Origin: Thalia democratica
Taxonomy: Eukaryota
Assembly: GCA_965202585.1 (NCBI GenBank)
Contig: OZ241830.1
Location: 31,062,001 to 31,126,000 of the forward strand
Reading direction: 5' to 3'
Length of the DNA: 64,000 nucleotides
Shown here: piece after piece, positions 11,774 to 52,411 of the stretch
Layout of the letters: every line of letters starts with the position of its first letter
Numbering within the stretch: position 1 is the first letter of the stretch
The notes under the pieces: model-generated
Databases searched by the model: none
Told to the model about the DNA's origin: nothing
The model's input: only the letters and a program-made list of their open reading frames with translations
Translations under genes and position numbers: made by a program

Positions 11774-14700
11774 TGTATTATAATCTATAAAAGTATTTAC
11801 AGTTTTAACTATTTAGTAGATAACAATATAATTTCTTACATCAAAGATTTTCATCCTTTAAAAAAAGTATAACAAGTTAAACTTTGAGCCTTCTTTCATA
11901 TTTTAAGGTGGTATTTTAATATCTTACAGTCCTGATTAAATACGATTAAGTTGTACTAGAATTTTCATTTGTTAATTATATATATATACTTACACAGGTT
12001 AAACAGTTAAGTAAATTAGTGCTAAGAATCTCATTTACGAAAATATTTTTCTTTAAATGTATTTTATTGACCTCTTGGGTATCATTATAAAACAAACATT
12101 AAATAATACTTATTTTCATAAGTTTAATTAAACTAACCATATGATATTATTTGATATATTGATTAAACTAAGTTTATCGGTATTCCTAAAATATGAATTG
12201 TTGTTACAGTTCTTCTTGTTTACTAGTTCACACTTAAACTTGACCAGCGTATCTAAATTTGTTAAAATTTTATAAAAGAAAAAAAAAATTTGAAGTTTAA
12301 AAACTATTTTGAAGTAGATTTTAGTTTTCGCAAAACACTTAACACAAACTTAGTAGATAAGTACAATGCACAATAAAAGTTAAGATAAAAAAAAGTTTAA
12401 ACGTAGTCTATAATATATTATTCAATTCTATTTAATATTTTAAAACTAAAAACTCTGTCCTAATTATCAGTGCTTTATATTATAATATTTTAGATGTTTA
12501 TTTAGTAACATGTTTTTTTATTAATTTTACAGAAAAAATTCAAAATAAATTTATCTAAAAAGTATCTAAAACATAATAAGAATGTATTTAATTCTGTAAT
12601 GTTTTAATATATTTTAGTAAATAATTTGGGTGTTTAATATTACAAATATAACATTAAAAAATAGCTACTATGTTGAAAGCAGCTTTTTCTACAAAATAAT
12701 TATTTAAACCACAGCTCTAAAACCCAAAACATTTTTGTAATGATACTAAATACTAAGTATAATTTTTAGAACAAAAATATCATATAAAACTTATTAAACA
12801 TATTATAATATATCATTTTAATAGATTAACTAATCTTTTAAGTAAATTTATTTACTTTTTTATTAGTAAACTAGTACTAATTACAGATTTCGAAAAATTA
12901 CTTTTGAAATTGCTTTAATTTCCAACATTTGTTTTGGTAACACCTTTATATTTATTCAAACTACTAAATTATAAAAAAACCTTAGGGAAACTACTGTTTT
13001 AAAATAAATTTAGAAAAACATTATTATAAAACCATGGCTTTCATAAATACAACTCGTGGACTAAGTTTTACTGGTTTAAAATTAATTTAGCTTGACTTTA
13101 ATTTAAACTGCAGTAAACGAACATAATATTTAATATAAAATTAAGTTTTACGATATTATGCATGTTAAATTTGTATTACAACAAACTAATGCTTGTTAAA
13201 CGATAAAACTATAAAATATTAGTGGTATAGTAAATTAAAAACATCTTTCAAAATATAACATCAGTAATATAAAAAAGAGAAAATAATTAATACAAACAAC
13301 GATTAATAACATTAGTAGTTGTTCTAATAATTTGGTCAATTGTTTACGAAAACTGATACATCTAGTCCAACAACAAAATGATAGCAAGCAAAATTGCAAA
13401 AACATTTTGAAAAACAATTAAAAGTAATTTCTCGTTTCAAAAGCTATGTTTATTAAAATTTTGTTATGTGCAACTAACATGTATTTTATTAACTAAAATA
13501 AACCGTTATTTTACAGTAAAAAATTCATAAAGTAAGTTTATTTTTAGATTATCTATTATATTTTGAATACACTAATCCTTTGTTATTTTTATAGAATTTG
13601 ATGAATTAAAATATTGTATTAAATTTTATTTAAAATAATTGGTCTCCTATAAAATTAATAAATAAGTTTTTAAGTTTTTCTTAGCATAACGATTCTCCTT
13701 TTAGTGCCTTTCTGCATGAATTGTTGTTTGTAAATTTGACAAATGCACAACATTTTAAATAAATTCAAATTCCGACAATTCAAATGCTTAATAAAAAAAT
13801 TGAAAGAGCCAAAGCTATAAGAGTAATGTATATTTGTCAAATATGAAAAAAAACATATAGGTCTTATTAATATCTACAAGCTATTTTTATTTTTGAACAT
13901 TTTTTTTTTGAGAGATTACTTAAAAAATAGAACATAGTGATATTTAGTAATTTTGGAGTATCTTAAAACTTAAAAGTTTTTGCAAAAAAGAAAAAGTGAC
14001 TTGTAGTAAATAGTAAGATCTACATAAGTAATTTTTAAATCTTGAAACTTATATCACTGTTTGAGATATAGCTTTTTAAATATTTTTATAAAAATTTAAA
14101 TTTTCGGAACTTGAATTTTCATGTAACCGAATTTGGCAAGTAGTACTCAAAAATCAATTATGTTAAACATAAATTAACTCAGAACTGTTAAACATTCAAA
14201 CTTTCAACCCTTAAATGTTTAAAACCCAATATTTTAAATCTAAAGTATAATCCATAACACATTTAACAGAAAAATATAAATCACAGGACATTAAGAGGAC
14301 AAAAACAGAAAAATTCTTTTTACAAAAAAAGAACGTAAAATATAATTTTAGTAGTTTTTAGCTGATGATTAAATACGCTCTTGCAAAATTAATAATGATT
14401 AATGTGTTTTAAAAATAATAGTTCTATAGCCTTTAAAAACAAAATATCTTTTTAATTTATGTAGTATAATATATACTAACATATATGAGTCTTATATTTA
14501 TTTTGTGCTAGTTTTTGTAATTATATTTGAATAAATATACACAAAATAACACACTAAAACAAAAATATTTTAAAGTTAAAATGTTTTGTTAAAACAAAAA
14601 ATTTAAGTTACAGAAGAAAAAGCGTAAATTTAGACAAAAATACTAATTTTAAAGTCATAAAAAAGCCGTCAATTTATGGAAAAATTAAAGTAAGTCGTAG

Positions 14701-14837
14701 GTTTACAAAAAAAAACCTGCTAACAGCCTAATACATAAAAAAAAACTTTAGATATTATATTTAATTAAAGAAATAAGAAATCACCTTGGATGACTTTTAG
14801 CAACAGTGTGTGGCAACTCACACATATTAGTTTTTAG

Positions 14838-14972
14838 AGCAAAACTTAACAGTCAATTACTTACGTTTATGCCGCTTATTTTGATCATCAAACTGTTTCA
14901 AATGGAAAGCATTTTTTGAGTTGCAACTTGGTTGCTGCATCCGGGGGTCCTGAGCTTGTTCTTTGTTCTTGA
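14838..14972 (+). other. Candidate non-coding exon of the hairpin-cluster host transcript
   Basis: ttttag|AGCAAAAC...TGA|gtatt. The paralog at 46392-46464 has ttctcag|AGAAGCAAC...CAG|gtattt. Confidence 0.3.
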
Positions 14973-15505
14973 GTATTAATAAAGTTTAAAATCTAAAACT
15001 TTTATCTGTTAAATAAAACTACAATGGATCAGTTTGTTTTAACTTTGAGTTAAGTTTTTAGTTTAAAAAAATGTTTCTATAGCTATATAATTATCTTTCA
15101 GTTATGTAAAAATATTTTGAAATCTACTTTAGTGCCTTAGCAAAATAAGATAATAAACGTTTAGGATATTAATTTTGATTGCTGTTTCATAATAAAAAAG
15201 AAGACTTAAAGGAACTTTAATTGTAAATTTATTAGTTCTACTGTCTAAAGTTCTAAAATCAAATTTTTTTTATTTATTGAAGATTTTATTAATTTCAAAA
15301 ACTACATCTAAATCTCAGTTCAATTTTTTATAGTTAGCTAGTGGTAAATACATATAATAGGTATAATTATATTTACTGTAAAATAGTAATATCACTTTTT
15401 ATTAAGTTAAGTATCAAAAATACAAAATAAAAAGTTTACTAAAACCTATAACCTTAACTTAGTCATAAATTTTAAACTTTCATAAATTTTAAAGCAACTC
15501 TAATA

Positions 15506-15508
<3 letters not shown>

Positions 15509-15542
<34 letters not shown>
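15509..15542. repeat. (AT)n microsatellite
   Basis: Directly visible. Confidence 0.95.
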
Positions 15543-15545
<3 letters not shown>

Positions 15546-16117
15546 GTAAATCTAAAAATAACTTTTAGTTAAATAAGAACTAAACCTCTGTCAAACACTG
15601 TTTATTTTAGACTTGGATAATTTAATGTTCTGATAGTCAACTTTTTTACTAAGAGGGAAAACAACTTCAACTACAAAATAAAAAGAATCTTCAATTAGTA
15701 AAAAGCTAACATAAACATGTGTATAATTTATTTTAAACTATAATATAGGAAAATTACAGATTTGAATAATTCAGTATTATTTTACTTATGACTGCTCAAA
15801 ACTTTTTACAATGACTTTATTAAATGAGTAAAATATATTCACTTAAACTCAGTATGTTGCATAACTGGGTCATACAAGTAGTTTAAATTTAAAAAAAGTA
15901 TACAAAACAAAAACTCCAGTAAGTTTATACATTATTGCTCAATTAAATTAAAACATTGATATTTTGACATAAAAATAAATATCTTCACTTTATTAGTTTA
16001 GACCCTTGGTTAAATTAAGAAAATAGTTATAAGTTAGTTATAGTACAAAAATTTCAAAAAAAAAATATTTTGAAAACAAGCTTTGATTAGCAACATTCCT
16101 TTTCTTCTGCTTTAAAT

Positions 16118-16151
16118 AAAAACGAGATAACTAAATGTTGACAAGGTAAGC
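16118..16151 (+). other. Conserved micro-exon end and 5' splice donor (AAG|GTAAGC)
   Basis: AAAAACGAGATAACTAAATGTTGACAAG|GTAAGC. Paralogs are 47409-47439 (tttttag|...AAG|GTGAGC) and ...AACAAG|GTAAGC ending at 48001. Confidence 0.45.
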
Positions 16152-19100
16152 TCTAAATAAAGATAGCGTTACTCGTTTTTCTTTCTTCTATTATCATAAC
16201 CAACCGAAAAGTAATGCAAACCTTACATCGTTGTTAATTACAACGGAAGAGCAAACAAAAACTTTTAAACTATTTTTTTAACATTTGAAGTGTATTTTAA
16301 CTTAGTATTTGTTTTCGACTTAGTTGATTTGTAAATAACAAAATGCAAAATAACAAGAAATTTAATAATAAAAGTAAAATAATTAAATTTAATCTTTTTT
16401 TACAAAACGAATTGATCTTTGTATGATCGATTTAAACATTTTTAGTGTTTATGTAGATATAACGACATGTAAAATACTTTATATAGCATAATTGTCATAT
16501 TAAAGAAGACAAGTTATAACATTTTAATGAAAATTTATGTAATTCAGGTTAGCTAATACTTATTCTCTTAAATTTTGATGTTTTACAGCTTATTCTTATA
16601 AATAATAAATAAAGATTGTTAATATTTATCTTTTTATTAAAAAAAAAAATATGGTAATTTAAAAGTTAAAAACTCGAAGGGGATATCAGAATTGTGGTTT
16701 TATTTAGTCAAATCTATAATACAGTGTGTAGGCTATTCAACTAATTAAATAAAGTTTTTGTTAAATTTGTTTAACTAAACTTTTTTGTTTTTTTTTGTTA
16801 TAAAATTGTTTTTATGTTTTCTAGTAGACATCATCAGATATGGTAATAAATTTGACTAAAATTCGCTCAAAGCAACTAACTTGCTCTGTCATTTATCATT
16901 TTAAAAAGGCAAGACCTATTACACTTCCTTCGCTTTTTGTATTATGCAAAATAGTCGTTTCGTACTTTGGTTACAATCTAATGAAAACAACAAAACTAAA
17001 CATGAAACTATTATTGATGACGTATTGATTTCATTCCTTATATAGATCATATTTATTTATTAAATCCTAACTATTTTAATAAAATAAACTTCTATTTAAA
17101 AAGATATACCTAATCAAAGTTAAATTTAGACTTTTGATGTTATTTAAGTTTTGGATGTTAAAACAAAGCTTTAGTCTGTTTTTTTCGGACAAAAAAACTT
17201 AAAATTAAAATATAATTTTGCTCTAAAAACACTTTTGCTATCTAAGTACGAACTAATTGTAAATATGATTTTTCATACCGTTAAAAAAAATAATAAAAAT
17301 TACATAGTTATTTTCTAAATTTACTGTAAATGCAAAACAACTATCACTTCTACGACAAAATAAAACAGATTAGATAGAAACATCGTTGACACTGCGACAG
17401 TATCCGTTTATAAAATATACTCGAGCTTTAAATTTTTAAGTTAAAACTAACAAAAGTCTTTTAACTATTTAAATTTTTCAGTTCAGTTTTTTTTATATAC
17501 TTGACATATAATTATAATTGTATACAATTTTTTAAAGTACCTTCGTAAAGCTTAATGTTATAAACTGCTTAAAACTTTTGTTTTTGTTATTTATCGATAT
17601 AAAAAAACTTTCAACTAACTCAATAGCTAGTGTAGTAAGTTTAAATAATTTCAAATGAATTGTCTTTGATTTAGAATTTAAACAATTTGTGTAAGAATTA
17701 ATAACAGTTTAAATTAATGTTTTAAACATAAAGTTTATTTTGGCCATCTTGAGCTTTTTGTTTTGGTGTTATTGTAGTAAAGTTATAGTTTTTTTTTTTT
17801 TGCTTTAATAATAAAGATTTTCTGCTTATTTTAGTGGTAAGTGGAAATAATTTTTAATGCTGTGTGTAAGTTTTGTAAAATATTTTCTGAATTGAATAGT
17901 TTTTAAATAAAAAGACAATTTTTACAAAAACTTAATTTATACTTTCCTTTTGCTACTGACATTTTTTAAAAATAACAAACATTCTAAGTTACTTTAAAAG
18001 TTTTTACTCTTTTGATTATTGCTTAAAGTCAAAACAATAAAAAAAATGACGAAAGTATTCAAATATCTTGTTTTGTGCAATTTAGTCTCCTGTGTAATTT
18101 TATCTTCGTGCAATTTTGACGTGTTTTCCTTAAATGCACCCGACGAAAGTATTCAAATATCTTTTAGATGAAAGATTGCATAACATTTCTTATACAAACT
18201 GTAAATCTTAGAATGGATTTAAAAATAAACATACTAAATTATATGACAGATATATAAGTATTAAAAAAGTATTAAAATCTTGTAACTCATCATTTTAAAA
18301 GTCTATGTCAAAATAGTTACAGATTTTTATTGTAAATTTGCCACACAAATACTCATGCATGACATTATATTATTCAAACAAGTATTTCTTGTTCAGTATT
18401 CAGAAAACATTATTTTAGATTTTGGTCAGAGTTCCTGGCATAACCAGTAAGGTTCAGAAATAAGTATTAAAAAAAGATATAAATCTCATAAAATATGTTT
18501 ACGTTAAAAATACATGCCTTATTTTAGTATGAGAATTAAAAAAAAATTATCATTATTTAATTTGTTTCTAATTGTAAATGTTCATACACAAATATTAGTA
18601 GATTTATTTTTGGTTAAGCTAAAAAACTATATAATATTTTGTTGTTTGTTTTGGTTGAGTTGTGTTTTAAAAGTTAATGAACTTTAAATATTTTACTTAA
18701 TATATGCATCCTTGGTTATATTTAAAAACAAATATGGTTTTTTACTAAATTAGATTTTGACCATTTTCGTTAGCTGTAAGTAATTTTGAGCACTTTTACT
18801 GATGCAACTGTTTAATACTAATGAGTTATAGCAAGCAATATAATACTATAATAGTATTAAAAAAATTAGTATACTTAATTTGTTAGTATGTGAATTTAAA
18901 TAAATTTAATTTGTATTCTAAAACGGCGTTTGGGAAAATGTTAAATAATGTTCAATTGTAAAAACCTGTATTAACTTTTTATTAATTAAGTATTAGATTG
19001 AATTTTTAATTCGCATGGTTTCTTTACAGATAGTCAATTTCAGATTATTAGAAAAAACTTAAAAATTTATTTAAGGTTAATTTGATTTAAAGAACTTTGA

Positions 19101-19637
19101 TCCTTTTTAAGTGAGTCAATTTTTTAATTTTAAATATAATCAGTCACTGTTTTAAATCTTTATAAATTAGCCTTAACCAATTTGAAACTAAATTGTAATT
19201 AAATAGCCTTGAATATTATCTGTAATTTTTATAAGATTTAGGGCACCTAGTTATGCATATGTAAAAACTCTTTTTTAATTCTAATCTGAAAATTCTAATT
19301 TCTTTGTGTTTATAGATATGGTAAATTATAACGATGTATGCCATAACTCTCATTGTTCTCTGTTTCTTTTTGTTTGAATATATATTTGTATGTATATATT
19401 TTATACCGGAAGTTTCTCATGAAGTAATAATTAACTATTATTGTAGCAGCTGAAAATTTGTTAGTTAACATGATTGGTTAGATGATTATAATAACTTTTC
19501 AATATTATTAATGTGATCAGTAAAACTAATACTGAATTTGTTATGATACATAACAGTACTTAATGTTTTCTAGTTAATTTTTGGTCAAATTAATTGAATT
19601 AATTACTAAGTTATAGCTGAGCAAAGATATATTACTT

Positions 19638-19713
19638 TGTATGTAGTAAAATGAATGGCAATAATGGTTGTAATTATCAACAACCTATGTTATCATTCAT
19701 ACAATAACAAACA
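19638..19713 (+). ncRNA. pri-miRNA-like hairpin H1 (predicted mature arm 5p, UGAAUGGCAAUAAUGGUU...)
   Basis: 21-bp upper stem with G:U pairs. UG at -14/-13. The first 18 nt of the 5' arm are identical in paralog H1', while the 3' arm has diverged. Confidence 0.75.
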
Positions 19714-19762
19714 GTTTATTTTCAATAGTACCTAAAAAGAAGCTCTTGTAACCTTTGAATAG

Positions 19763-19840
19763 TGTTTAGAGCTGAATGATTGCTGTTGTTAGTTCTTTGT
19801 TTTCTGGAGAACTAATTCACTAATCATACAGTTACAAACA
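19763..19840 (+). ncRNA. pri-miRNA-like hairpin H2 (predicted mature arm 3p, GAGAACUAAUUCACUAAUCAUA)
   Basis: ~35-bp stem including the lower stem. Basal UG. CAAC ~15 nt past the predicted 3' cut. 3' arm is 21/22 identical to the paralog; 5' arm has 6 differences. Confidence 0.8.
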
Positions 19841-19881
19841 TTCAACCTACTACATATTACACTTTAATATGACAAAATCTG

Positions 19882-19959
19882 TGCTAGTAGCCAAATGATT
19901 TGAAATGGATACTTCTTTGTTTAAAGAGAAGTATCATTTCAGTCATACAGTTACAAACA
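19882..19959 (+). ncRNA. pri-miRNA-like hairpin H3
   Basis: UGAUUUGAAAUGGAUACUUCUU pairs with GAGAAGUAUCAUUUCAGUCA. Basal UG. Both arms are essentially identical in the paralog. Confidence 0.8.
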
Positions 19960-20010
19960 AACAATCTAAAAGCTCAAGAAAAGAAAAATTAGATAACAAT
20001 AATAAATCAT

Positions 20011-20101
20011 TGCATATTGCAGTAAGGCAATTCTATTAGTTCCCTGTTTAATGTTAATTTTATAACAGGAACTAATATGGTTGTCTTTCTGAATTAATGC
20101 A
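20011..20101 (+). ncRNA. pri-miRNA-like hairpin H4 (type B)
   Basis: AGGCAAUUCUAUUAGUUCCCUGUU pairs with AACAGGAACUAAUAUGGUUGUCU. TGCAT...ATGCA base with basal UG. Confidence 0.75.
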
Positions 20102-20214
20102 TAAATAATTGTTACTTAAGCTTAAATAGTGAAATTAAAGGTTAGTTATAAATTGTATGTTTGTTAAATTTTGATATAAACTAATTTATAGAAATTTTTA
20201 AGTATCTTTAAATG

Positions 20215-20296
20215 TGTTTTGAGCTAAATGATTGATGATAAATAGTTTTTTATATAATCAAAAAAACTATTTCCACCAGTCATACAGTTACAAATA
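20215..20296 (+). ncRNA. pri-miRNA-like hairpin H5 (predicted mature arm 3p, AAAACUAUUUCCACCAGUCAUA)
   Basis: Stem with the shared scaffold and basal UG. 3' arm has 1 difference and 5' arm 4 differences versus the paralog. Confidence 0.75.
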
Positions 20297-20366
20297 AACA
20301 ATCTAAAAACTAAAATGTTATTTAGCAATGAAACTCATGTTGAAAATTCAATGGACTGTCAGCCAC

Positions 20367-20452
20367 TGCTTATATCGACAAGGCATTCATGTTAGATTCT
20401 GTTAAATATTACTTAACAGGAGCTAACATGAATGCCCTACTGATTTATTGCA
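20367..20452 (+). ncRNA. pri-miRNA-like hairpin H6 (type B)
   Basis: GGCAUUCAUGUUAGAUUCUGUUAA pairs with UUAACAGGAGCUAACAUGAAUGCC in a near-perfect stem. Basal UG. Confidence 0.75.
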
Positions 20453-20466
20453 TAGAAAAATGACAT

Positions 20467-20522
20467 GAAGCTAAAATGTTTTAAGAGACTATTAACATTA
20501 GTCATATAGTTACAAGCAATCA
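20467..20522 (+). pseudogene. Internally deleted relic hairpin H7
   Basis: Keeps the scaffold (GAAGCTAAAATG...AGTCATATAGTTACAAG) but has only a short stem. Absent from the unit 2 cluster. Confidence 0.5.
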
Positions 20523-20595
20523 ACTAAAAACCTTAAGAGGTTTTAATGATTATTTTGAATGTGTAGAACTTCTCAAATAATTTTTACTTTTGTTA

Positions 20596-20966
20596 CAGGG
20601 TTGTCATAAAACTTAGAATGCTGGAAAAGTCTGGAATTACACAATTTAGGCTAAGAAAAGCTTGAAAAACCCCAAAATTAAAAAAAATTGTAAAAAAGGG
20701 AAAAATATGGGATTTTATATAAAATTCTCTAAAAATCATGGAATTTTAAACAATTTTTACAAGTTAAGTAGATAAATATATTTTGTCACCACCAACCTTT
20801 TTTATTTTTAAAAACCCTTTCAAACTTTAACAGTACATTTTCAGTGTTGCTTTGCTACTTAATTAAATTCCTGACCCTAAACTTAATTTCAAACTAAAAA
20901 TAGACCCAAAAATGTGTACTATGAAAATACCTGAAAGAAATTTTTCAAACACTAGAGGCAACCCTG
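20596..20966. mobile_element. hAT-like MITE (CAGGGTTG family)
   Basis: Termini CAGGGTTGTC...GGCAACCCTG. A truncated ortholog lies at ~53000-53310. Confidence 0.7.
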
Positions 20967-23409
20967 TAGTTAGCTTTGTAAGAATCATTTACACTAGTTA
21001 TACAATTAAATACAAAACAATGTACACAAACTATTAACTGGTCAATATACCATAACTATAATTAGAGCTAGAACAGTTGGGTTAAACAGCTTAAATCTTT
21101 GCAGAAAATATATTTACTTGAAAGAAGTTTAAAACATTTATATTCTAGTAATTAAGTAAAAAATTCATGCTTGTTATTACTGAAGATATGTGTTTGTATA
21201 ATGGCCACTAAACCTGGAATGCTAGAAAAAACTGAAAAAAATCTTGAAACTGACAACTTAAGCTAAAAAAAGCCTTGAATTTAAGAAAAAGTTTTAAAAA
21301 AAAGGAAAAACTTTGAACTTTAAATACTTTTTACACATAAGTTTTGTAAAATTTTGATTAGACTGCAAAATTCTAAAGTAAAGTTTTGTCACAAATATAG
21401 ACACTAAAAATTTTGTCATTACCAATTTTTTTTTACAATTTAAAACATATTTAAAGTAGTTTAAGAGTATCTTTTCAATAGTGTTATACTACTTAAAACA
21501 GTTTTTTTAACCTTATGCTTAACTTGAAATAAATATAGAAAACCTTGTAAAGGTTTCTCAAAAGTAGGTGGGCAACCTATGTATGTAATTTACTAACAGC
21601 TGATACCTGATTCATTTTAAATAGACAAAAATTTTATTTACACCAATTATTTAGTTAATTTATTTACCACATTGTACAAATAATTAAACAAAAAAAAAGA
21701 TTAAAATTAGTTAAGGTAATGTTTTTGAAATAGTTAATTTATTATGAAACTACCTAAGCTGTTTTTGGGTACAAATAAATCATTACTGATAAAAAAAAAG
21801 TTGTTAATCTTATTAATACCCACTTGCCTATGTTAAAAATTTTATTGTGTCCTTTTTCATGAAAGTTATGTTAGGAGATAATTCTTTAGTTTAACTTTAG
21901 CTAAAAATAGTAAATCATAGTTTTTAAAATTATTAAGCTAGCAAAACTATTTTCGTCCTGCAATTTGAAACAATAAATTTGTTGCTCCAATTTAGTTGCA
22001 ATGCAAGATAATTATTTTTAACAAAAAAAAAATCTGTATCTATTCATAGCTACAAAATTAAAGTAGTAAAAACTTTGATCGTAAAAATGTGAAAAAAAAA
22101 TTTTTAACAAACAAATGATTTAAAACTTTATTTCATCATTTTTTTAGTTGTTAATATGCCTGCAAACTTTAGGAAACATTTTTTGAGTTTTAGATTCTTA
22201 CTTTATGTACCAACTAGTGAATTTGGTTTGAAGTAATATTTAAAAAAAATTCGTTGAGTACAAAATTGGTAAAAATTATAATTTGTCTATAGCTTGAAGT
22301 GAAGGTTCTTATCAAAACTGTTAAGTTATTCTATATTAAGGTTTTCTACTGACGGTAAAGTTTTATTTAGTGCCAATTATAATAAAATTTAAAAAGATTT
22401 AAGTTTCAATTTACATTTGTAGTTAGAAGTGAAGAGAAAAAAGTTCTTAGACGTATTTAAAGTTAGTTTTAAAACTTCTAGTAGACCAGGCCAGAGATTT
22501 CCGTAAAAAAACTGTTTCAGAAACTTAGGGCGCATAAGCAATAATGGTAAGTGGGCACAAAGCCACAATTTGAAACTTATACTAGAAATTCTTGAGTTGA
22601 TGATATAGAGAAAAAACAGTTTTATGCTTATTTAACAGTTCTTTTTTAAGAGAGGGAGCCATTGCTTTTAAATTTTTATTAATAGTAGCCTTATGAAAAA
22701 ATCTTTTAAATACAGTGATCTACAGAATAGTTTTTTAGAATTAATTTTCATGATCGATTTATTTGGCAGAGATTTCAAAAGGATTGCTTTTCTACTAGTT
22801 ATTAACCTTTTACTTTAACGCCCTATAACTAGTTATTATTTCGTTAAATAGTTAATTTTAAGGATACCCTGTTTCAAATATAACATATATTTAATGTTTT
22901 TAAAACAACTCTAGAATTACTCAAAGATCTAAAAATTTTAGTTATATTAGAGCTCAGCTGACAATTTCAAAATTGCCACCTATTTTAATTGTGATCTCTC
23001 CCCTAACTTTTTAAAATCTCCCAAAAGGCGATATCGCCTTCTATGAGTAACCCACACCTGATCTTAGACAAGCTCAAAATTGCAACTTATTAGTTGATAA
23101 TAATAAACCTCCTTCATTATAGATCACTTTTTAAAGCATAGACCAAAAGTGCCTAATATTTGTTATCGAACGACAAAAAAAATTTGGATTAATTGGTCAT
23201 AGGAAATGGTTTACGATAGGACCTTTCGGTTAACGAGTCGTACAACACTTGGTTATTATTTGACATTTGATCTAAAACGAGTTCAAAAATGGACAGTTTG
23301 CAAAATTAAAAACAGTAATAAAAAGTTATTGTGAAACTTTAGAAAACAAAAATTATTATCTTATAAAAGTCTTATCGAGTAACATTTTTTTTATTTTTGG
23401 AAAAGAATA

Positions 23410-23620
23410 TAAGAGGCATGCTGTATTTTTAAAATATTTTATCAAATACCTTTAGCTAATTAAAAACTAAAACATCATGTTTGAATATTAACACAGAAAT
23501 CTTCGATTTAAATAAAGAACAAACTACACGTAAAATTTCAATGCATACAAGATTATTAATAACGGAGATTCCATATCTCTTTACTTCTATATCCTTTTAA
23601 ACAACGTATGCAATAAATCA
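23410..23620 (-). mobile_element. Possible decayed DNA-transposase fragment (Sola-like), paralog at ~55545-55790
   Basis: The unit 2 copy translates SAKGTGRNTQEITACLC, recalling the E-x-x-G-R-x-x-x-E-I-x-S-C-L motif of invertebrate DDE transposases. The family assignment is from memory only. Confidence 0.3.
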
Positions 23621-26600
23621 GGCTAAATTTTATAATAAGTAGATAAATTATAATAAATATTTTTTTTTGTTTTGATTCGAAATTTTCTTACTCTATGAAG
23701 AGGTTTTATAGAAATACGATTACTCTCAAACAATTTGAAAAAGTATTATTCATACTATCTGTACAAATTACTTGGTAGAAAAGCCATACATTCGCCCCTC
23801 AGGAATCAACGTTCTCCATTGGTTACGTTCTCTTTTTAGTAACGCACTTAGGAATTTTTAAGAAATATGGAATAAAAAATTTAATGCTCAATATTTTATG
23901 TTTTTTGTAACATAAAGTAGAAAAATTGAAATGAATTTTTAAAGAATTTTAAAATAAATATTAAAACAATAAATAAGAGGAGATATATTTTTAGTTATTT
24001 TTATATTGTTGCAGTTTTATTTTGTTATATCTATAAGGAGCCTATAGATAGAATCTAATCATTTTATTTTATACTTTAAGTGTTTTATCCATCTTTTAAA
24101 GTTTAAACTTTTAAATCATATACATTACAATGCTCAAATCCTCAAAAAGTTGTAGCATAATGTTACATTTAAACTTAACACATATCTTACTTTTAGCTAA
24201 TTCGTTCTTTGCCAACCTTCTTACAAATTCGTTCTTTGCCAACCTAAGATTAAACTTGTCTTGTATCGTACTACAGAAAAATTCAAGACAAGTATAACCT
24301 TTAACCTTAAGTTGGTAAGAAACAAAAAAAAAAAAAAATTTGTATTCACTAATAGAACTTTTATTTACAACATTTTACATGTATGTACATGTCAAAAAAA
24401 AAAAGTGTTTTCTTAACAAAAACTTGAAAAGTCTTCAATCATAAGGAAATAAACCAATAAAGTAGGTATGTATGTTTAATTGCGTTTAGTTACGCACTTT
24501 TGTGGTGGACACAATGTTTGAAGATTGGCGAGAGGTGACTGTACATAATAAGCATATACAAAAGTACCAAAATAAAAAGTATTTGTTTAAAATGAATTAA
24601 GTATGTTTATTTTCAAGCTAAAGATTATGAAAAGATAAGGCTTTGCTTATACTCAAAATCAGATGTTTGTATATTAGAAATTGTTTATTAATACAATATT
24701 TATCATTTAACGTCAACTAAAACTTAATAAACTTATTGTTGTCTAAAATTCAGATAGTTTTTCAAACATTTATTCTCTTTAAAAAAACTAGCTCAAAACT
24801 AGTTTGTTAAAGATTAAAACATTTAATCGATTAGCACAATTACATCTTAAATGATTCCTTTCAATTTGTATTTTTAAGATTCATTTAATAAAAGTTTACA
24901 AAATAATTAATATATATTGTTTTATGACCACTAAATTTACCTGTTTTTTAATTTTCATTACTTATAAAAGTTATCTTGTTCAAAATTAGCTTAATGGAGC
25001 TCACAATTGTTGTTCGATATAAACAAAAAATATCTTGAACGAATTCTTTTAAATTGTTTAAATCAATTGTTTATTTTGATTAAATAAAACAATTTAAAAA
25101 TATTCTTATAACCTTGAAATTCAATTAATCTTTTGTATGTTTTTTCTTCTTAAAGTAAGCACAGTATCAAATTAACTTAGTGAGCTTAAAATTCTTATTC
25201 AATTTTTCAATTTTTTTTCTCAAAATGGTTTTGAAAAGTCTGTATATTAATTTAATTAAAGTCGTAAAGGTTATTAAAACAAATTAAAAAATAAACTTGG
25301 TTCATATAAAGCTTTTTTTGTTTGGTATTAAAGGTAGTTTTTTATTATAAACTAGTTTTTGTTATAATTTGAAATTTTTTAAACAAGACCGAAAAGCATA
25401 AAACAAAAAATAACTAAAGAAGATACTCAGGCAATTTGTTTTTGGTAGTGCTGTATTAATGTTTACTACCAACCGACTATAATTATTTATAATCATTTTA
25501 TTTATGTAGTAGTTTATTTAGTTTTAACGTTTTTCGCTTTTGGTAAAAAAACAATAAATTGATATACCTGGCATTGTTTGATTTAAATTTGTTAAATACG
25601 TGATTACTTCTATATCATTCAGAGATGGACAACATACCATCAGTAAAAAATCTTTCTGACCAGAATTTCATTTTGTAATTTTGAAAACTACTACAGAACA
25701 AATAAATTAAAAAACATGAGTGAACAGAAAAATAGAGTGTGATTCAAAAATAAGTATGACTTTACAACCAGGTTTATTATTAAAACTTTGAATTATCAAT
25801 TACAAATATGATCTTGAACAAATTTTTAACTAACTTAGTATATGTTGACAAAATAAAACGGCCTGCATAAGTCCATGACTTATAATCCTTGCTAGATAAA
25901 ACAGACTGTAGCATCTGACTCACTGGCTAGAGAAATTATCTTAATCTGAAGGCAAATCTTTTTTGAAATTTATTTTTATAGTTTTTAGTTAACGTTTTCT
26001 TCAAACTTTAACGCAAACAATATTAGGATTAAAATAATTACTGTTCTGTAATGAATAAAACAAAATGTAAGATCCCTGTATTTTAAAGTCTAAATTTTGC
26101 TATGTCAAAAAGCTAATCAAAAACTGTTTTTTGCATATGAAAAATTTCATCTATAACTGTTGAAGCACATAAGTAGCTGTTATATGAAATACAATTGATA
26201 AGTTCAGCTAATGATGTGTGTAAAACATAAATTTTTAATGAGCTACTCATTGTTAATTCAGTACACACTCAGAAAGAAGTATAATTTTTACAATTCATCA
26301 TGTTTTGTGCAGTTTGATAGACACATAAATGTCTGCGTTTAGATATTTAAGTGCTTTTGTTGCTAGTAGTACTGATTTTTAAATCTTTGTGCCTGAGTGG
26401 AACTAACTGTATTTATATATTTTAGTGTGCTGTTTCTAAATAACATAAAACAAAATCTAACTGTACATTTGGTTCTAATTGATTGTTCTCATCCACATTT
26501 AATATATACTTTGAACAGTTTTTAACACTGAAACGAAAAAAGATCTTTTTATATATGTTTTTTTTTAAGACTATGTGTACATATTGTAACAAAGTATTTT

Positions 26601-32258: not shown

Positions 32259-34272
32259 TAAAAAGCAAAATGTTGTTTAATATTTTTCTACTTAAACTAA
32301 ACACTTTTTTGTTCAAGCAAAATTTTTTTATTTGTGTTCTTATTACATAACCTTTAATAAATCACTTTTATTTACCTAAAAAGATTAAGTACAACAAATA
32401 TACGAACCTATTACAATATAACTCCATTTATAGTAGAAATAAATTTACTATTTTACTGTAAAAACTACTATAAATTTTTGTTCATTTAAAATAGTAATAA
32501 ACTTAAATAATACTTTCAAAAAACTCTATAGTTAAACAAATACTTTAACAAAAATAATTGAGTTAAATAGTTTAAATAAACTCAAAAAATATTTAATTAA
32601 AAACAGAAATTAGTAAAAGCAAGCAGAAAAGTAAAAAATATTTAATTTTTAAATGCGTTAAAACATTCTATAAAATTTAATTAAGTTTTTTTATCAAATT
32701 TATTAATCATTACTTTTTTTTATTAATTACTTTTTTCAGTTAAAATACAGTTAAAACAGCATAAAAACATCCTATTGACCTTAAAAAGATTTAAGTGCAT
32801 TGTTAATTGAATATTGTTTTAGGTAGAAGTACATATAAAGCAGTATTACAACGTTCTAAACAATTTAAAAAGATTAAAAGTAATAAAACCTAAAAGTATA
32901 TTTAGTCAGAAGACACCTAAAACAGCATTAAAACGTTCCAAAGAATATTGAAAGGTTAATAAATAGATATAACTAAAAGAACTTGTAGCAATGAAGAACA
33001 ATAAAATTTTAAAAAAGAAATTAAATTTTGTTTACAAATTAAGATTATTTTAATTGTGGGAATTTCAGTCAAAACACTTAGCATATTAAGAAATATTAGC
33101 AGTTTTTCCTCAACACCGTTTTACAGGGCTGCCAATTTTTTTTTTGCAAAATTTTCTCCGGGGTTTGAAAACTTTACGTTTTTGGGTTTATTTTTAGTGA
33201 AAAGTTAAGTTTAAGGTAAAAAACTACTTTATTGAATGACAAAAAAAGCTTTCAAATTATTTGGTCCTGAGATTTGTTTCACGAAAAACCTTTCGGTCAA
33301 CGTGTCGCACACCTTTAGAATGCCGTTCAACGTCTTGTCCAGGACTTTGTCTTAAATTGTCAAGGACCTTCCTTATCCAGAATATTGTCCTAAATAGTAC
33401 AAAAACATTTAAAAGATACTGTAAAGCTACTTGTAATGTGTTTTTTTTTATTATTGATGATGACTACCAAGATTATTAATATTAAAAATCTAACAATCAA
33501 TAAATATAAACATTTTAGGTGATTAAACAATGATTTAATCAATGTTATCCTTATTTAATCCTATTTACATTCACAGCAAATAATAAACAATTTCTTTACT
33601 TTAAGTTTACTTTATGTATCTAAAGAATATCTAACTACTACTCGCATTTACAAAGTAACATTATATTTTATTATTTTCTGCATCTTCAAAATCTTTTTTT
33701 ATTCTTCAAATTTTATAATCAAAATTTTAACTCAATATAGTAATACAAATTAGAATAAATGTTCAAGATTGTTTGATTAGCTTTTGGTTTTTATGTTCTG
33801 TTTAATTTTTTTTTAATAACTGATGAATCCAGTTAATAAGACATATTATGATTTAAAACTTAATTTATCAAAATTGCACATTTCTATCATTAAATGATAT
33901 TTAATTATCAAAAACGAGGAAGTGGAAATGCTGTAAACATACAAAAAGTTCAAAAAATTGTCTAAATTGTCTTGCTTAAATCTGCACCAATTATGAGTTA
34001 CTATAATTAAAATAACTAATAGAAGTTGTTAAGAAAAGAAGTAAACATATTTTTATTTGTATCCAAGACCGAAAGTGATAGAATTCGGTAGAAAACTTCT
34101 ATAACTCATAAAAAACAATCTAAATTTGTGTAAGTTTAATTATTTTTTTTTATTACAAAATAACTATAAATAATAAAAATATGTAATAAAATTTTTTTTT
34201 AACAACCGTTTATCAATTACTTTAGTTATTTAAATTTAAATAATACTTTAAAATATACTGTAAGTAACCTGA

Positions 34273-34333
34273 CCTAGGTGTGCACTTTGATCACATCATA
34301 AAAGACGTACTCAACCGACAGTGCACACCTAGG
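34273..34333. other. 61-nt stem-loop with a perfect 14-bp inverted repeat
   Basis: CCTAGGTGTGCACT-N33-AGTGCACACCTAGG. Degenerate paralogs at ~60657-60718 and ~63753-63810. Confidence 0.7.
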
Positions 34334-35199
34334 ATTTTTGTCTTATTACCTACATTAAGCCTATTACAGACATAGTAGAAGCTACTAAAGTTTACAAATG
34401 ACTCTTAAAACAAAATGCCTTAAAACAAAAGCTTCCACCATAATAACAATACATATTTTTTAAAGTATATTAGAAGTCTTGAATATTTATTTAAGATATG
34501 TGTTTAAATAAAAGTATTTATCTTTGTATATTTGTATTTATATGAGCCCACAAAGATTTATAAAATCTGTCGTAATTTGTTATATTTTTAAAATTTACAT
34601 ACTACATACAATTAAATAGTTATTTTAAACAATTAAAGATATCAAAGGTAGAGTAAAACATACATATGAATAAAGGAGGATAAAATATTGAGGTGCTCAT
34701 AGTAGACTGAGGTTTCCATAGTGAATAAAAGCAGTGATGGTTTTAAGAAAAAGTGCTGAAAACTTTTGTTAATTTTAGAAGTATCTTACTTCGTTTACAT
34801 GCAACTATTATAGCTACCATAAATTCAAGTTAATTTATTTTAAATTGTAATTTTCATATTTTTTTTAAGGTAGATTTTGTTAAATTTTTTATTATTTTTG
34901 TTTCTATATTTATAATTAGGATAAACAAATTTAAGTTACACTATTTGTTAATTCTTTAAAGAAAAAAATATTGTTATTTTAAATAGTTTTTATACAGTTT
35001 TTATATTTATAACTTTTTTATGTTTACTTTATTTTTATTTTATAACTAGTACAGTACAATTTAATTTCAAATCTACATTTTTGTCTTATGACTTCTGAAT
35101 TTTTGTTACATAAGTACAAACAAGTTCATACCAAATCGGCAGATTGTGCTATTTGAATGAGACAGAAGATAGTTAAACAATAAAAAACAATATTTAGAA

Positions 35200-43640: not shown

Positions 43641-44424
43641 CAATATAAAATAGGTAAAATACAAATACTACATCCTAAACATTAGCTTTTTAAAATTCTA
43701 TAACTAAATTTGCATCAAATATGTGCTACCTTTTTTTATTATAAATATAGTTTAAAATAAGCATAAATAAAACAGTAACCTTTTTTGGTTTTGAAGTATG
43801 CATTTAAGTTCTAAAGCATTTTAGTATATCTTATGCATAAACAGGTTCGTATAGTGGTGTTAAAAATAAGATATCAATTAAAACTTATCAAAACTAAGCT
43901 TACAAAGTGAATATAAAACTATAAGCTATTTTTTTATCTAAAAACAATTTAAACCTGAGTTTTAAAAACCCGAAAAATTCTGGTAATTATACTTAAGTTG
44001 AAGTATATTTTGAGTGGGAAAATGTTACATGAAAAACCTTTACTTAAAAAAAAAAATAATGAATTTTATTACAATTAGTATAGTAGTACAAATTAGGGAT
44101 TTTTATAAATTACTTTTGAAATTGTGTTAATTTTCCACATATACTTTGGAAACACTTTATTGTTTATCTAAATTGGAAGACACAGTAAATATTTTTTTTG
44201 AAATACAAATGTTCAAAAATAATTTTTTATAAACATTGATATAGAAGTAGAAATTTTGAACATACGTTGGTTAAGTATTCCCCCTTTTAAAAAAATTCTT
44301 ATTCTAAAACTTATTTTTTAAATACAGAACAGTAGTAAACGAAAATAAAAATTTAAAAATTTAATTTCATAAAAATTTACTGTATGATACGGTTAAATTC
44401 AAATCGTAACAAACGATACGAGTG

Positions 44425-44905
44425 TGAACTTAGCTTGAAAGCGTATTTTAGGAATTTTTTAAAAACGTCCACTTTTAATTTTTTTTTCAATTTTTTTTTT
44501 TGCATAAAAGGTTGTATATCTGAAAAACAAAAATCGTGCAAAATTTGAATTTTCCTGAAAAGTTTATTCAGGCTTATGGTATAAAAATATAAATAGAAAA
44601 AAAAAATTCAGAACATCATTAAACTTATTTTTATAAGAATTTTTTTTTTTAATTTTAAAACCAAAAAATTTTTTTGGATAAAAGGTTGTATAAATAAAAA
44701 AACAAACAAAAAACACAAAATTTTTAAATGGGCCACACTTAAAAAGTCAAAACCCAATTCAATGGATTTTTTTTAAATTAAAGACAAAGGACCGTTCTCT
44801 AGAAAAAAAAAGGTTTTTAATAAGCTATTAAGATAAGGAAAATAATTGGGTCTTAAGTTGGACATTTTTATAACATTCCTATAATACGCTCTCAAGCTAA
44901 GTTCA
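44425..44905. mobile_element. MITE bounded by ~31-bp inverted repeats
   Basis: TGAACTTAGCTTGAAAGCGTATTTTAGGAAT and ATTCCTATAATACGCTCTCAAGCTAAGTTCA are reverse complements with 2 mismatches. Confidence 0.75.
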
Positions 44906-46391
44906 TGTTTGTACAAACGATGATGTCTTTTTTAGTGGCTTGTTCTAAAAACTTAGTTTTGAAACAATGTCTGTACTTCATTTTTAAAGAAAGATTACAA
45001 AAGTTATCAAGAAAAAAAATACATCTGAAAAAGATAATAAACATAATAGTTATGACAGCTGTTTACGCAAACTTATTCATCTTACCTCACAACAAAACAA
45101 CAAAAATGATTAATTGCTAAGCTTAAACATAAAAAAAAATACAAACAGCAGTAGCTTTATATTTTATTTGTAGTTATGTTTATTAAAACCTTTCTTAACT
45201 GATTTAATCAAAAAACAAAAAAAAAGGTACAATCAGTAAGATTTAGATGATTTATTAATTTTCTTAAACTCTAATTAAAACAAAAAAATATCTAAATATA
45301 GATATTTTACAAAACTGACAACCAAAATTAATTCAAGAAGGTTTTTTGTATCTGTTAATAAAGTATTTTTTATTGCTTTTTTTCTATAAAAATATAATGT
45401 TTTTTGTGAAGTTGAAAATATGTAACACCAAGAATAAAGTACTAAGAATACTTAGAATAGATATAAAAAAGTACTAGAAACAAGCTTTAGAAATAAATAT
45501 AACATAAAACGTTTAAACTTATAATCAAAAAAAATTTTATCCAAGATTTTTTATTTAAACCGCAACCCATGTAACAAAAACATACAAATCCCAATACTTT
45601 TTATTATATAAAACATTGAAAAGATAATTTGTAAGAGTTAATTAATCTTAGTTATAAACTTAGTAGCTTTTAAATAATGAGTAATATTGAATAAAGCTTA
45701 GCAAAAATAATAATAAATAGTGTAATAAAAAATTTTAGTAAATGTACAAAACCGTTTTTTGAAAAAGCTTAGATAAGAAATTGCTGATTTTTCAAATTTA
45801 AGTTTTTTGATAACATATACGGGTTTTATGTATAAAGTTGTTTTAATGTAGCAAATAAACTAGAACTTTCAACAAAAGTTATAATATTTGTTTTTTTAAC
45901 AACATGCTTTAAACATCTACACATTTAATACATTTGATTATTTTCAAAGTAACCACCTGTTAAGGTTGTAAACCAGCCTGAATAACCAACAAGTGTCTAA
46001 ACAATATTTTATTAGCATGATTCAGACTTTGTAAAATAATTGAAAGTTATTGTAACAGTTAAAAATTTAACAGTGTTACTAAGAATCTAGCTTAAACACT
46101 TTACCTTTCATTTTAATAACAAAAATATTTAAAAAGAACATAAAAAAAGTTATTTTGAATTTAAATACGGATGTTAAAGTCATAGAAACAAACCTTAGCT
46201 TTACAAATATACAAAAACATTCCTTAATTTTTAAAAAGCCAGTAATCAAACCTTAGTCATTCAGAGATTTGCTTAAGTTTTTCATCGAAAAAATATTTAA
46301 ACTATCATGATAAGGTTTGAGTCAGCTTTAAAGGATTAAGGTGGCTTAGAAAACTACAGTGCATTGTGAATATGTTACTTTTTTTTCTCAG

Positions 46392-46464
46392 AGAAGCAAC
46401 GAACGAACACTTACTCACCTTGTTTTGATCACATTCATGGAACTTGTCAGCTCATCGATGACAG
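46392..46464 (+). other. Candidate non-coding exon, paralog of 14838-14972
   Basis: Strong polypyrimidine tract with ctcag acceptor, and a CAG|gtattt donor. Confidence 0.4.
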
Positions 46465-47408
46465 GTATTTTAGATTTTCTCGAATTTTGATTTGTCTACA
46501 ATTTAAATTATTAGATTAAACTTTGAATACAATTTTTAATATTAAAATTAGACTTTTTTCAGTATCATTTATAATAATCATTTATATATTTAACAACATA
46601 TTTAACTATTTTTAAGTACTTTAACAAAACAAAACACAAAAAGATTCAAGATATTAAGTTAAACTGCTCTTTTTTTACAAAAAAAAATTAATCACTTAAT
46701 AAATTGTACATCGAAAGTTTTATAAGTTTTTTATCTAGTTTTTATCTAGTTTTTAAATATCAAAATCTTTATTTTCAATGTATACTTTTATCAATTTCAT
46801 AAATTAAAGTCTAATCAGCATTTTTATGTTCACAAAAAGCCAGTGGTAAATTTTTTAAAAGTTGTTTGTTATTCCTCAAGTTTTGTTATTATATTTTTAA
46901 AAATTTAAACAGTCTTGGATTTTTTCAAAATAAAATAAACTTTGCTAATAAATTATAGAGATACATTTAAAGATAAGTTGTGATCTTTTATACAAATGTA
47001 AACTAACTTCAATACAAGTAGAAAAACTTTGTCAAAATTTAATGAAATATACTACAACTCTATTAAATATTATTTTTGTAATTATATATGTTTCAACCTA
47101 TAGTCAACTGCTTTAAATAAGGGGAAATAACCCTTGATATAAAATATCTCTTTTTAGTATAAAATGAAAAAATTCAACAAAAAATTAACTTAATTAAACA
47201 AAATAATAAATTTCAGTACACTTTTAACATACATTTGCTAACTTAATACAAAACTACATGTTTTTCCTTATAAAAAATATGTTACATGTTCAATCATTTG
47301 GTCAAATTATGATTTTTTCAACTCAGTTAGCAAAAACACATCAGCTTAAAGAAAAACTTGTTAATGCAGGTTTTGATTAGCTAATTTCTTTTAATTTCTC
47401 CTTTTTAG

Positions 47409-47439
47409 AAAAAAAACGAGATCACTATGTGTTATAAAG
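47409..47439 (+). other. Candidate 31-nt micro-exon
   Basis: ttctcctttttag|AAAAAAAACGAGATCACTATGTGTTATAAAG|gtgagc. Confidence 0.4.
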
Positions 47440-50400: not shown

Positions 50401-51018
50401 AATTATTTTAATTTAGTATAAAAGTATATACAACTTTTTGATTGCTTTGTTTTGCGTGAATTAAGTGTTAGGCCAGTGAATGATCTATATTTTTTAATAA
50501 AATTTATATCATCCCTGGTTTCGTTAAGAACAATTATGGCTTTTCGTAATTACAATTTTGACCATTTTTGTTAGCTGCATGTAATTTTTAGATCATTTAC
50601 TGACACAACATTTTGATACAGCAGTTCCATAATATAAAAGTAAGCAAGAGAGTTTGTTTTAAATATAGGTATAGTAGATATTATTCTGATTCAGAGTTTG
50701 TAAATATGTTAAAACATATGCACATCTGAATAATGATTTATGTAACTTAAATAGTTATTATTAATTTATGTGATGTAAATATTGAATAAAGTTTACAACT
50801 TCTTTGGTTGCTATACAGTGTGGTCATTTCAGGCTAGTTGAAGAATTAGAAAAAAAAACTTAGTTTCGGCTAATTATAACTCATTAAATTTAATTTAAAG
50901 TGAGGCTTACTGGGGCTATTTATAAAATTTAATTCTGGTTTTCTAGCTTTTTTAAGTTTTATCAGGTTACCATAAATTATTACAGATTGAATTATGCTTA
51001 TTCTATTTATGGTTAACT

Positions 51019-51359
51019 CAGGCTTGTCACTTACCTGGAAAAACCTGGAATTTGACAACTTAGTCATAAAAAACCTGGAACTTAACAATTTTAACATGCT
51101 CATTAGTAAAATTTCGAATTGACTAAAAAAATCATAAAAATAAAAATAATTTCAATCATCAAAAAATTTTTTCATTGAATAACAAATTTGAAGTAGCTTT
51201 ACAATATCTTTTCAATGTTTTTATACTATTTAACACATTTTCTTATCTTAAACTTAAGTTTAAACTAAAAATAGACCAAAACATGTGTACTTTTAAAAAT
51301 CTACAACAAATTTGGAAAACCTGGAAAATTTAAAAAAAAAAAAACGAGTGGCAATCCTG
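51019..51359. mobile_element. hAT-like MITE (CAGGGTTG family), not seen at the homologous unit 1 site
   Basis: Termini CAGGCTTGTCAC...GTGGCAATCCTG. Inverted orientation relative to 28296-28675. Confidence 0.75.
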
Positions 51360-52172
51360 GTAACTTTATTTTAGTTATGTATAGTAATAATGTTATTTTA
51401 AAAATTTTTACCTCTTGAATGTTTATTTACATTCAAAAATTGTTTATTATTAAAAAGCAATGTCATTTAAGATAAGAAATCGAAATATTTTTGAATAAGA
51501 TCTTATTTATATAAGTGTTTAAGTTATGCTGTTTAACTGAATTTTCAAAGACCAAATTCTAAACAGATTATATTCACAAAATATGCTAAATTTAAAAAGA
51601 TAATTGACATAACTCTAATTGTTCTCTATTTCTTTGGTTTTGTTTAAGTTTGTACCGAAAACTGTTTAAACTGTAATAGATTTTTAGTGTGGAGCAATCA
51701 TTTGGTTATAACAGCTGCACATAGTTTTTCTATTGTATTTAGTTAACTGAAAAAATAAAGTCGCCCCTGAACTTTACATCTTAATAGATATGCAGACATA
51801 TAAACTTAGTGTTAGTTTAAAAGTTTTAATTCTATTTAAATAGATTCACTTTATTGAACTTCATAAAAAATGGTGTAGTTGTTTTAAATTTTAGGCTAAA
51901 TTTTTTAAACTTTTTCAAAATGTTTTAATTAATTTTTTTTTTAAAGAAGTAGTATGTTTTACAGTTTTATGTATGGCTTGACTACTTAAGTGGTTTATAA
52001 TAAAAGTAAATTTCAAACAATTTAAAGTGTCTAGCAAAATATTATAATAAAACTGTGTTAATATATAATCAATGGTTTCTAATAAATTTTTAGTAAAATT
52101 AATTAATTGTTTAGAAAATGTTTATTAGTTATTTAATAAACATTTTTTTAAATTTAATTAGTTATCTTACTT

Positions 52173-52249
52173 TGTATGTAGTAAAATGAATGGCAATAAT
52201 GGTTCTCATAATAAAAAAAACATTTTTTCCATTCATACAATTACAAACA
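52173..52249 (+). ncRNA. pri-miRNA-like hairpin H1'
   Basis: 5' arm matches H1. The 3' arm has changed but still pairs. Basal UG. Confidence 0.7.
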
Positions 52250-52298
52250 AACTTTCTTCAAAAGTACCAATCAAGAAGTTCTTTTGACCATGGAATAG

Positions 52299-52376: not shown

Positions 52377-52411
52377 TACAACCTATTACTGATGCGATGT
52401 GATGATTACTG

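Follow-up and report, generated by a model that had tools for sequence, protein, structure and literature searches.

A duplicated cluster of six microRNA-like hairpins with a conserved stem base in Thalia democratica

Hairpin cluster and genomic setting

The window, which is the whole 64-kb stretch (64,000 nt) of Thalia democratica DNA that was analyzed, carries six hairpins on the + strand between positions 19636 and 20452 (cluster A, Table 1). These hairpins, H1 to H6, are ~80-95 nt each, and every one folds as a single stem-loop. An earlier note on this DNA had described an array of small-RNA hairpins, and same-strand, Microprocessor-shaped hairpins are borne out by six folds that score well above those of 200 dinucleotide shuffles. 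Four of the hairpins are of type A (H1, H2, H3 and H5) and two are of type B (H4 and H6). A further type A element, H7, has kept the 3' motif only; because it is without a fold, its earlier label 'relic' is fair. The gaps between successive predicted 5p starts (125, 119, 129, 204, 154 and 78 nt) are close to the unit spacing of ~120-210 bp that had been described.

Folding energies differ between the two strands for three of the hairpins. H2, H3 and H4 fold 5-9 kcal/mol better on the + strand than on the - strand, where the sequence of H2 reaches only -18.4 kcal/mol. This bias is caused by G-U pairs and points to transcription of the + strand. The fold energies of H5 and H6 show no strand preference. 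When the window was scanned with a sliding fold, 9 of the 18 strongest single + strand hairpins were located within cluster A and its paralogue, cluster B, each of which spans <1 kb. The G+C content of the window is 22-33%, with only the part at 2-6 kb richer in G+C, and no open reading frame of at least 90 aa was found on any strand of the 64 kb.

Table 1. Hairpins and duplicated segments in the window (fold z of H1-H6 relative to 200 dinucleotide shuffles; R1, covariance model of type A).
Feature	Position	Strand	Properties
H1, type A	19636-19716	+	fold z -3.05; R1 64.6 bits
H2, type A	19761-19843	+	-27.4 kcal/mol, z -4.52; R1 87.1 bits
H3, type A	19880-19962	+	z -5.62; R1 78.3 bits
H4, type B	20011-20101	+	-33.1 kcal/mol, z -5.71; basal frame TGCATA...TGCATA
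H5, type A	20213-20299	+	z -4.20; R1 96.4 bits
H6, type B, stablest of the cluster	20367-20452	+	-35.9 kcal/mol, z -7.44
H7, type A relic	20447-20521	+	z -0.72; R1 23 bits; 3' frame TCATATAGTTACAAG retained
Cluster B, whole-cluster paralogue, order unchanged	52171-52982	+	BLAST 19625-20454 vs 52160-52982; folds; R1
H1'	52171-52252	+	upper stem lost
H2'	52297-52379	+	folds as well as or better than H2
H3'	52410-52492	+	folds as well as or better than H3
H4'	~52537-52628	+	folds as well as or better than H4
H5'	52738-52824	+	folds as well as or better than H5
H6'	~52889-52980	+	decayed, z -0.79
Extra weak family member, 3' of cluster B	53780-53868	+	R1 29.9 bits, E 3.8e-4; z -5.82
Old collinear segmental duplication with cluster A	12862-23521, partner ~44074-55661		BLAST patches, 73-85% identity

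The DNA contigs that match the locus come from two organisms and show two haplotypes that differ by several percent. In most hairpin bins, contig depth is ~3-10x the background of ~40-130, a level that can be accounted for by cross-matching paralogues together with the two clusters and two haplotypes. A higher depth, beyond what this accounts for, is seen in one bin over the 3' half of H5 (20258-20331). The contigs are short unitigs, and copies of cluster B and of the second haplotype also align to cluster A; among the differences listed, most fall in spacers, loops and the 3p arm of H1.

Directly downstream of cluster A, at 20628-20997, there is a very high-copy repeat with a summed contig depth of 1e4-1e6, compared to ~40-130 for the background. 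It has many variant joints and loose ends, and related pieces are present at ~21222-21540, 51167-51313, 53142-53231 and 53417-53562. This repeat is probably a short interspersed element or a satellite-like family.

Copies in the window and beyond

Clusters A and B belong to an old segmental duplication of ~10 kb, of which only patches are still alignable outside the cluster. The longest alignable non-coding block of the duplication (21569-23182 vs 53771-55334) has 75% identity over ~1.65 kb and no ORF, and its copy B starts at the extra hairpin 3' of cluster B. The outer stem of this extra hairpin is TGTGTTTG/CAAACA, and a 13-nt stretch is common to it and the 5p arm of H5. Its counterpart on the cluster A side, at 21570-21680, is without a fold (z +1.26).

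A covariance-model search for further loci had been suggested in the earlier note. The type A model R1, run unfiltered over the 64-kb window, recovered the eight type A hairpins of the two clusters (59-96 bits), the relic H7 and the weak member at 53780-53868, and no further copies in the window, where the type A family is confined to two loci and two relics. Exact matches to the 15-mer TCATACAGTTACAAA number five in the window, three of them in cluster A and two in cluster B. With up to three mismatches there are 18 matches in the 64 kb, compared to 9.2 +/- 3.1 in shuffles. A search of metagenome contigs with the motif AATGA-N40-56-TCATACAGTTACAAA gave 39 single matches, which is about the estimated chance number; by covariance model none of these is a real homologue, the best score of 25 bits being supplied by the motif itself.

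Common frames of the two hairpin types

For alignment, the type A hairpins (H1, H2, H3, H5, H7 and copies) were anchored on AATGA and TCATA. The 5' frame TGTGTTT-NN-AGCT-R-AATGA is common to H1, H2, H3 and H5 and to the relic H7, and the 3' frame consists of TCATACAGTTACAAAC followed by ~10 further semi-conserved bases. Across nine aligned copies AATGA is invariant and TCATACAGTTACAAAC is near-invariant, which confirms that type A hairpins reuse one lower stem. Counted from the foot, the basal stem takes up positions 1-13 of the 5' arm, with TGTGTTT opposite AAACA and, beyond a small loop, AGCT opposite AGTT. Between this basal stem and the duplex that begins at AATGA lies a 2x2 internal loop, which is conserved. 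H1 carries the variant AGTA/AATA in its basal stem, and a compensatory C-G to U-A change is found at columns 12/75.

The type B hairpins were also said to have a frame of their own, and this holds for H4 and H6, both of which contain the three blocks TGC.TA..C..AAGG.A, ACAGGA..TAA and CTGA.TTA.TGCATA. In the lower stem of H4, pairing is kept at every difference between clusters A and B, as read by eye from the aligned sequences. The origin of the units by tandem duplication, another part of the earlier description, agrees with the 3' flanks of H3 and H5, which are 92% identical over 38 nt.

Upper stems of the paralogues

The degree to which the upper stems differ was analyzed by zone. The four type A paralogues of cluster A (H1, H2, H3 and H5) were cut by coordinates, and all pairs were compared, with 500 shuffles as reference (Table 2). 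Only the middle 7-10 nt of each arm is at chance level among the paralogues. The statement that one scaffold surrounds different upper stems thus holds for the arm middles and is overstated for the apical 9 nt, which are still 65-69% identical, a level reached by at most one of the 500 shuffles.

Table 2. Sequence identity by hairpin zone among the cluster A paralogues and between clusters A and B (A vs B counts are sums over H2, H3 and H5).
Zone	Paralogue identity	Shuffles reaching it	Identical, A vs B
5p positions 1-7	93%	0/500	21/21
5p middle	44% (shuffles 40%)	94/500	19/27
5p apical 9 nt	69%	0/500	26/27
Loop	44%	77/500	
3p apical 9 nt	65%	1/500	25/27
3p middle	52% (shuffles 45%)	39/500	26/27
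3p last 7 nt	100%	0/500	21/21

The apical part of the stem behaves as a module that reads TAGTTCTTT/AGAACTA in H2, TACTTCTTT/AGAAGTA in H3, TAGTTTTTT/AAAACTA in H5 and TGGTTG/CAACC in H1. These modules differ by single substitutions, each of which is compensated on the opposite arm. The type B hairpin H4 has the apical module TTAGTTCCCTGTTT, which is 12/14 identical to that of H2. Wholesale swapping of upper stems is contradicted by this retention of the module, with compensatory changes, even in a type B hairpin. Since the module is common to type A and type B, all hairpins of the cluster are best seen as descendants of one ancestor. Type A and type B differ in the stem base, and H1, H2, H3 and H5 mainly in the middle 7-10 nt of each arm.

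The homology of the apical modules rests on the position-anchored zone analysis, not on local alignments. Pairwise local alignments of the upper stems were mostly non-significant, the exceptions being H4-H6 (score reached by 0/1000 shuffles), H2-H3 (7/1000) and H3-H7 (10/1000); the score of H2-H4 was reached by 60/1000 shuffles and is only suggestive when taken alone. When the eight type A hairpins are aligned by fitting to the model, 87% of the alignment cells are paired, compared to 33-51% when the partners are slid. Five pairs changed on both sides, and the covariation score was reached by 0/500 shuffles in this alignment of paralogues of one genome, which is itself fitted to structure.

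Conservation since the cluster duplication

The hairpins of clusters A and B are 86% identical (H2, H3 and H5, 90-92%), whereas the spacers are 62% identical. The duplication is old enough for the spacers to be near saturation. The duplex ends are 100% identical between the clusters and the basal stem is 84-88% identical, as against 62% in the spacers, which supports selection on the common stem base. In this respect the earlier proposal of a constant scaffold agrees with the data.

Within the duplex, the two arms have not changed to the same extent. H3 shows no change in either arm between A and B. In H2 the predicted 3p arm is unchanged and the middle of the 5p arm has five changes, and H5 has one change in the 3p arm and four in the 5p arm. 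Summed over the three hairpins, the identity of the 5p middle is close to that of the spacers. For H1 and H4, the 5p strand is the better-conserved arm, and the 5p half of H1 has no difference from its cluster B copy.

The combination of conserved hairpins, diverged spacers and an almost unchanged 3p middle suggests that the candidate guides have been held constant since the duplication. This does not fit the proposed rapid change of the upper stem, given that H3, the 3p arm of H2 and the 3p arm of H5 have accumulated 0, 0 and 1 changes, respectively, since an old duplication. Nor does it fit a fast-evolving repertoire: the differences among the paralogous arms appear to be old, each having been fixed since the duplication, which is the opposite of what that term implies.

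The best-conserved piece between A and B runs from the 5' flank through the 5p half of H1 (19625-19672 vs 52160-52207), with 39 consecutive identical bases. The 3p arm of H1 has diverged between the clusters despite the conserved 5p half. In the H1 region, the selected unit may not necessarily be the hairpin as such.

Assignment to a class of RNA

The hairpins agree with the canonical geometry of animal microRNA precursors, an imperfect stem of ~35 bp (~11-13 bp basal stem and ~22 bp duplex) between single-stranded flanks. The predicted 5' arms are 37 (H2) and 41 (H4) positions long, internal loops are small, and apical loops are 6-9 nt. The arms are conserved above the spacers and substitutions preserve pairing, as seen with paralogues of one genome in a model-fitted alignment. 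By eye, each stem has a UG at its foot, 12-14 nt upstream of where the 5p strand is predicted to begin, and five of the six hairpins carry a UGU 5' of the apical loop; a CNNC 16-18 nt downstream was seen in only ~4/9 type A copies. Both the basal UG and the apical UGU are reportedly favored by Microprocessor.

No known family was recognized. With Rfam 15, there were no matches at the gathering threshold over the whole window, and the best sub-threshold scores were obtained with mir-7 (27.3 bits, threshold 51.8) and mir-1490 (24.8 bits, threshold 75). Allowing E values up to 10 in Rfam also gave no credible family. Conserved and novel microRNAs have been reported from small-RNA libraries of Salpa thompsoni (PMC5174732, PMC10686999). 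The candidate mature sequences were not found in the text and few supplementary files covered for the Salpa thompsoni small-RNA papers, and the species may differ.

Other classes were considered. A mirtron, in which the hairpin ends coincide with the GU and AG splice sites of a short intron, was rejected: the 3p arms of type A all end in CAG, but the 5' ends are without GU, and conserved pairing runs ~13 bp below the duplex, like in a Drosha substrate. A box C/D snoRNA was rejected as well, the only Rfam snoRNA match being SNORD79 with 18 bits (E 9.3); UGAUGA is present in H5 only and CUGA in type B only.

We consider a polycistronic set of microRNA-like genes, made by tandem duplication and encoded on the + strand of an animal genome with very high A+T content, a fairly likely identity of the locus. 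The cluster would most likely be a previously undescribed, lineage-specific family of six hairpins that is present twice, and it is probably functional and microRNA-like.

Proposed origin and processing

The relationships among the hairpins suggest how the cluster could have formed. A single ancestral hairpin would have been multiplied by tandem duplication, with at least one duplication step copying a two-hairpin A+B unit, and the two subfamilies, distinguished by their basal stems, would be the result. The completed six-hairpin cluster would later have been copied within the ~10 kb segment.

The proposed scaffold has two parts. One is the basal stem, ~13 bp long and with UG at the bottom, and the other is the ~7 bp with which the miRNA duplex starts. 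We propose that this frame has been preserved for fixing the cut site of Drosha/DGCR8 and the geometry of the duplex end, and with it which duplex end is presented. Each hairpin would release a duplex of ~22 nt. A Microprocessor cut ~13 bp above the basal junction would put the first nucleotide of the 5p strand at AAUGA or right beside it, with the 3p strand ending in UCAUACA(G). The predicted 3p strands are GAACUAAUUCACUAAUCAUACA for H2, GAAGUAUCAUUUCAGUCAUACA for H3 and AACUAUUUCCACCAGUCAUACA for H5. Their 5' regions (GAACUAA, GAAGUAU and AACUAUU, respectively) are related without being identical, their middles differ, and they have the 3' end UCAUACA in common. They would be diverged paralogues with different seeds, each under purifying selection since the cluster was copied.

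Conservation suggests the 3p strand as the better guide candidate in H2, H3 and H5. Between the clusters, the 3p middle (26/27 identical) has changed less than the 5p middle (19/27), an asymmetry with p ~0.02 by our own estimate, which suggests that selection in H2 and H5 acted on the 3p strand. The strand with the less stably paired 5' end is preferred for loading. In the predicted structures, the 5' end of the 5p strand lies in the 2x2 internal loop and starts with A, so thermodynamic asymmetry favors 5p and conflicts with the choice of 3p that is based on conservation.

Alternative interpretations

The position of the constant part allows a different reading of what is conserved. AATGATT occupies predicted 5p positions 1-7, so that part of what was called scaffold could equally be a shared seed. 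The 5p guides would then form one seed family with the same targets, type A positions 2-7 being AUGAUU (AUGAAU in H1), and the 3' partner would be conserved only as its complement. No pattern of microRNA family evolution would be more ordinary. It agrees with the 93% identity of the segment among paralogues and 100% between clusters, with the 5' end of the 5p strand in an internal loop and beginning with A, which would favor its loading, and with the better-conserved 5p arm of H1 and H4. On the other hand, conserved sequence takes in ~19 nt of the 3' flank and, on either side of the stem, the ~13 nt beneath the predicted cut, for which a seed alone is insufficient, and in H2 and H5 it is the 5p middle that has four to five changes while the 3p middle (with H3 included) is almost unchanged. 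That the constant part is mainly a shared seed instead of a processing scaffold is therefore rather unlikely in our judgment, but the two readings are compatible and not mutually exclusive.

A stronger version of the scaffold idea would take the stem-base module, which comprises the basal stem with the adjoining 7 bp of duplex and ~19 nt of flanking sequence on the 3' side, as a sequence-specific and lineage-specific signal for processing or sorting that stays unchanged while the inner duplex is free to acquire new specificities. A cofactor could bind to the module, or conserved offset RNAs (moRs) could be derived from it. We regard such a dedicated signal as doubtful. If it did exist, it would provide a natural modular backbone for new microRNAs in salps.

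The earlier note went further and envisaged natural guide cassettes, in which a fixed backbone carries rapidly changing upper stems, possibly directed against transposons or young genes. Arm middles that are at chance level among paralogues inside a frame of 93-100% identity, together with predicted 3p seeds that differ from hairpin to hairpin, would be expected from such a system. However, H3 and the 3p arm of H2 have not changed and that of H5 has changed once since the A/B duplication, whereas spacers have fallen to 62% identity, and the apical stem module has been kept across paralogues and across both frames. Furthermore, the window holds two loci and two relics only, and no homologues were found in the metagenome contigs. 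A role of the guides against transposons also found no support in the window, where the predicted arms have no match with up to four mismatches elsewhere, the adjacent high-copy repeat included. Guide cassettes are thus very improbable, and an ordinary microRNA-like family is the most likely identity of the cluster.

Remnants of a MITE-like transposon, with the frames as terminal inverted repeats and hairpins that are not processed into small RNAs, are an explanation to which we give hardly any credence: the 5' and 3' frames are indeed imperfect inverted repeats of ~19 nt and a very high-copy repeat lies directly downstream, but the copies found by the model are in tandem, all on the + strand and restricted to two syntenic clusters with none dispersed in the 64-kb window, most hairpin bins are at ~3-10x background as against 1e4-1e6 for the neighboring true repeat, and the hairpins are conserved well above the spacers, with changes that preserve pairing.

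Comparison with known systems

Paralogous microRNA clusters that arose by local duplication include mir-17~92, zebrafish miR-430, C. elegans mir-35-41, primate C19MC and Drosophila testis clusters. A general account of animal microRNA clusters from local duplication is given by Mohammed et al. (2014; PMC4238352). The cluster described here resembles animal polycistronic microRNA clusters in having same-strand hairpins of ~80 nt, 80-200 nt apart and related by tandem duplication. It also has signs of birth and death, with relic H7 and the decayed H6' and H1', and arms that are conserved above the spacers. Among the paralogues of a textbook family, conservation is highest in the mature strand, particularly in its seed. 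Here, in contrast, it is highest in the stem base and the duplex end, with predicted 3p seeds that differ by 1-2 nt and arm middles at chance level.

A conserved stem base is also a feature of engineered constructs in which the fixed basal stem and flanks of a microRNA frame a ~22-bp duplex with a unit-specific inner part, such as the shRNA-mir backbones miR-30 and miR-E. The natural hairpins differ from these in that the apical stem and loop are partly conserved and only ~7-10 nt per arm differ. Moreover, the units are diverged paralogues under purifying selection, and not exchangeable inserts.

Tunicate microRNA loci, in Ciona, are said to give moRs in addition, derived from the stem proximal to the pre-miRNA. 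Like at those loci, conserved sequence in the present cluster reaches ~13-19 nt past the predicted duplex on both sides. The basal-stem requirement of Microprocessor, however, explains most of this flank conservation, and production of moRs from the cluster would be pure speculation.

If expressed, the cluster would give the poorly annotated pelagic tunicates an additional microRNA family that is lineage-specific, has six genes and exists in two copies. It would be a clean natural case of paralogues with more conservation in the stem base than in the guide, a modest unusual trait that bears on how the context of the primary transcript constrains microRNA evolution. The understanding of small-RNA systems would be unchanged by it, as tandem duplication, divergence and purifying selection suffice.

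Other hairpins in the window

On the - strand, a very stable, G+C-richer hairpin at 34255-34356 has a near-perfect stem of ~14 bp around GGUGUGCACU and folds with an MFE of -43.5 kcal/mol (z -7.7). It is unrelated to the cluster; a further small-RNA gene and an inverted repeat are both possible identities. A long near-perfect hairpin, also on the - strand, is located at 24226-24326, just outside the duplicated block (MFE -33.5 kcal/mol, z -6.7).
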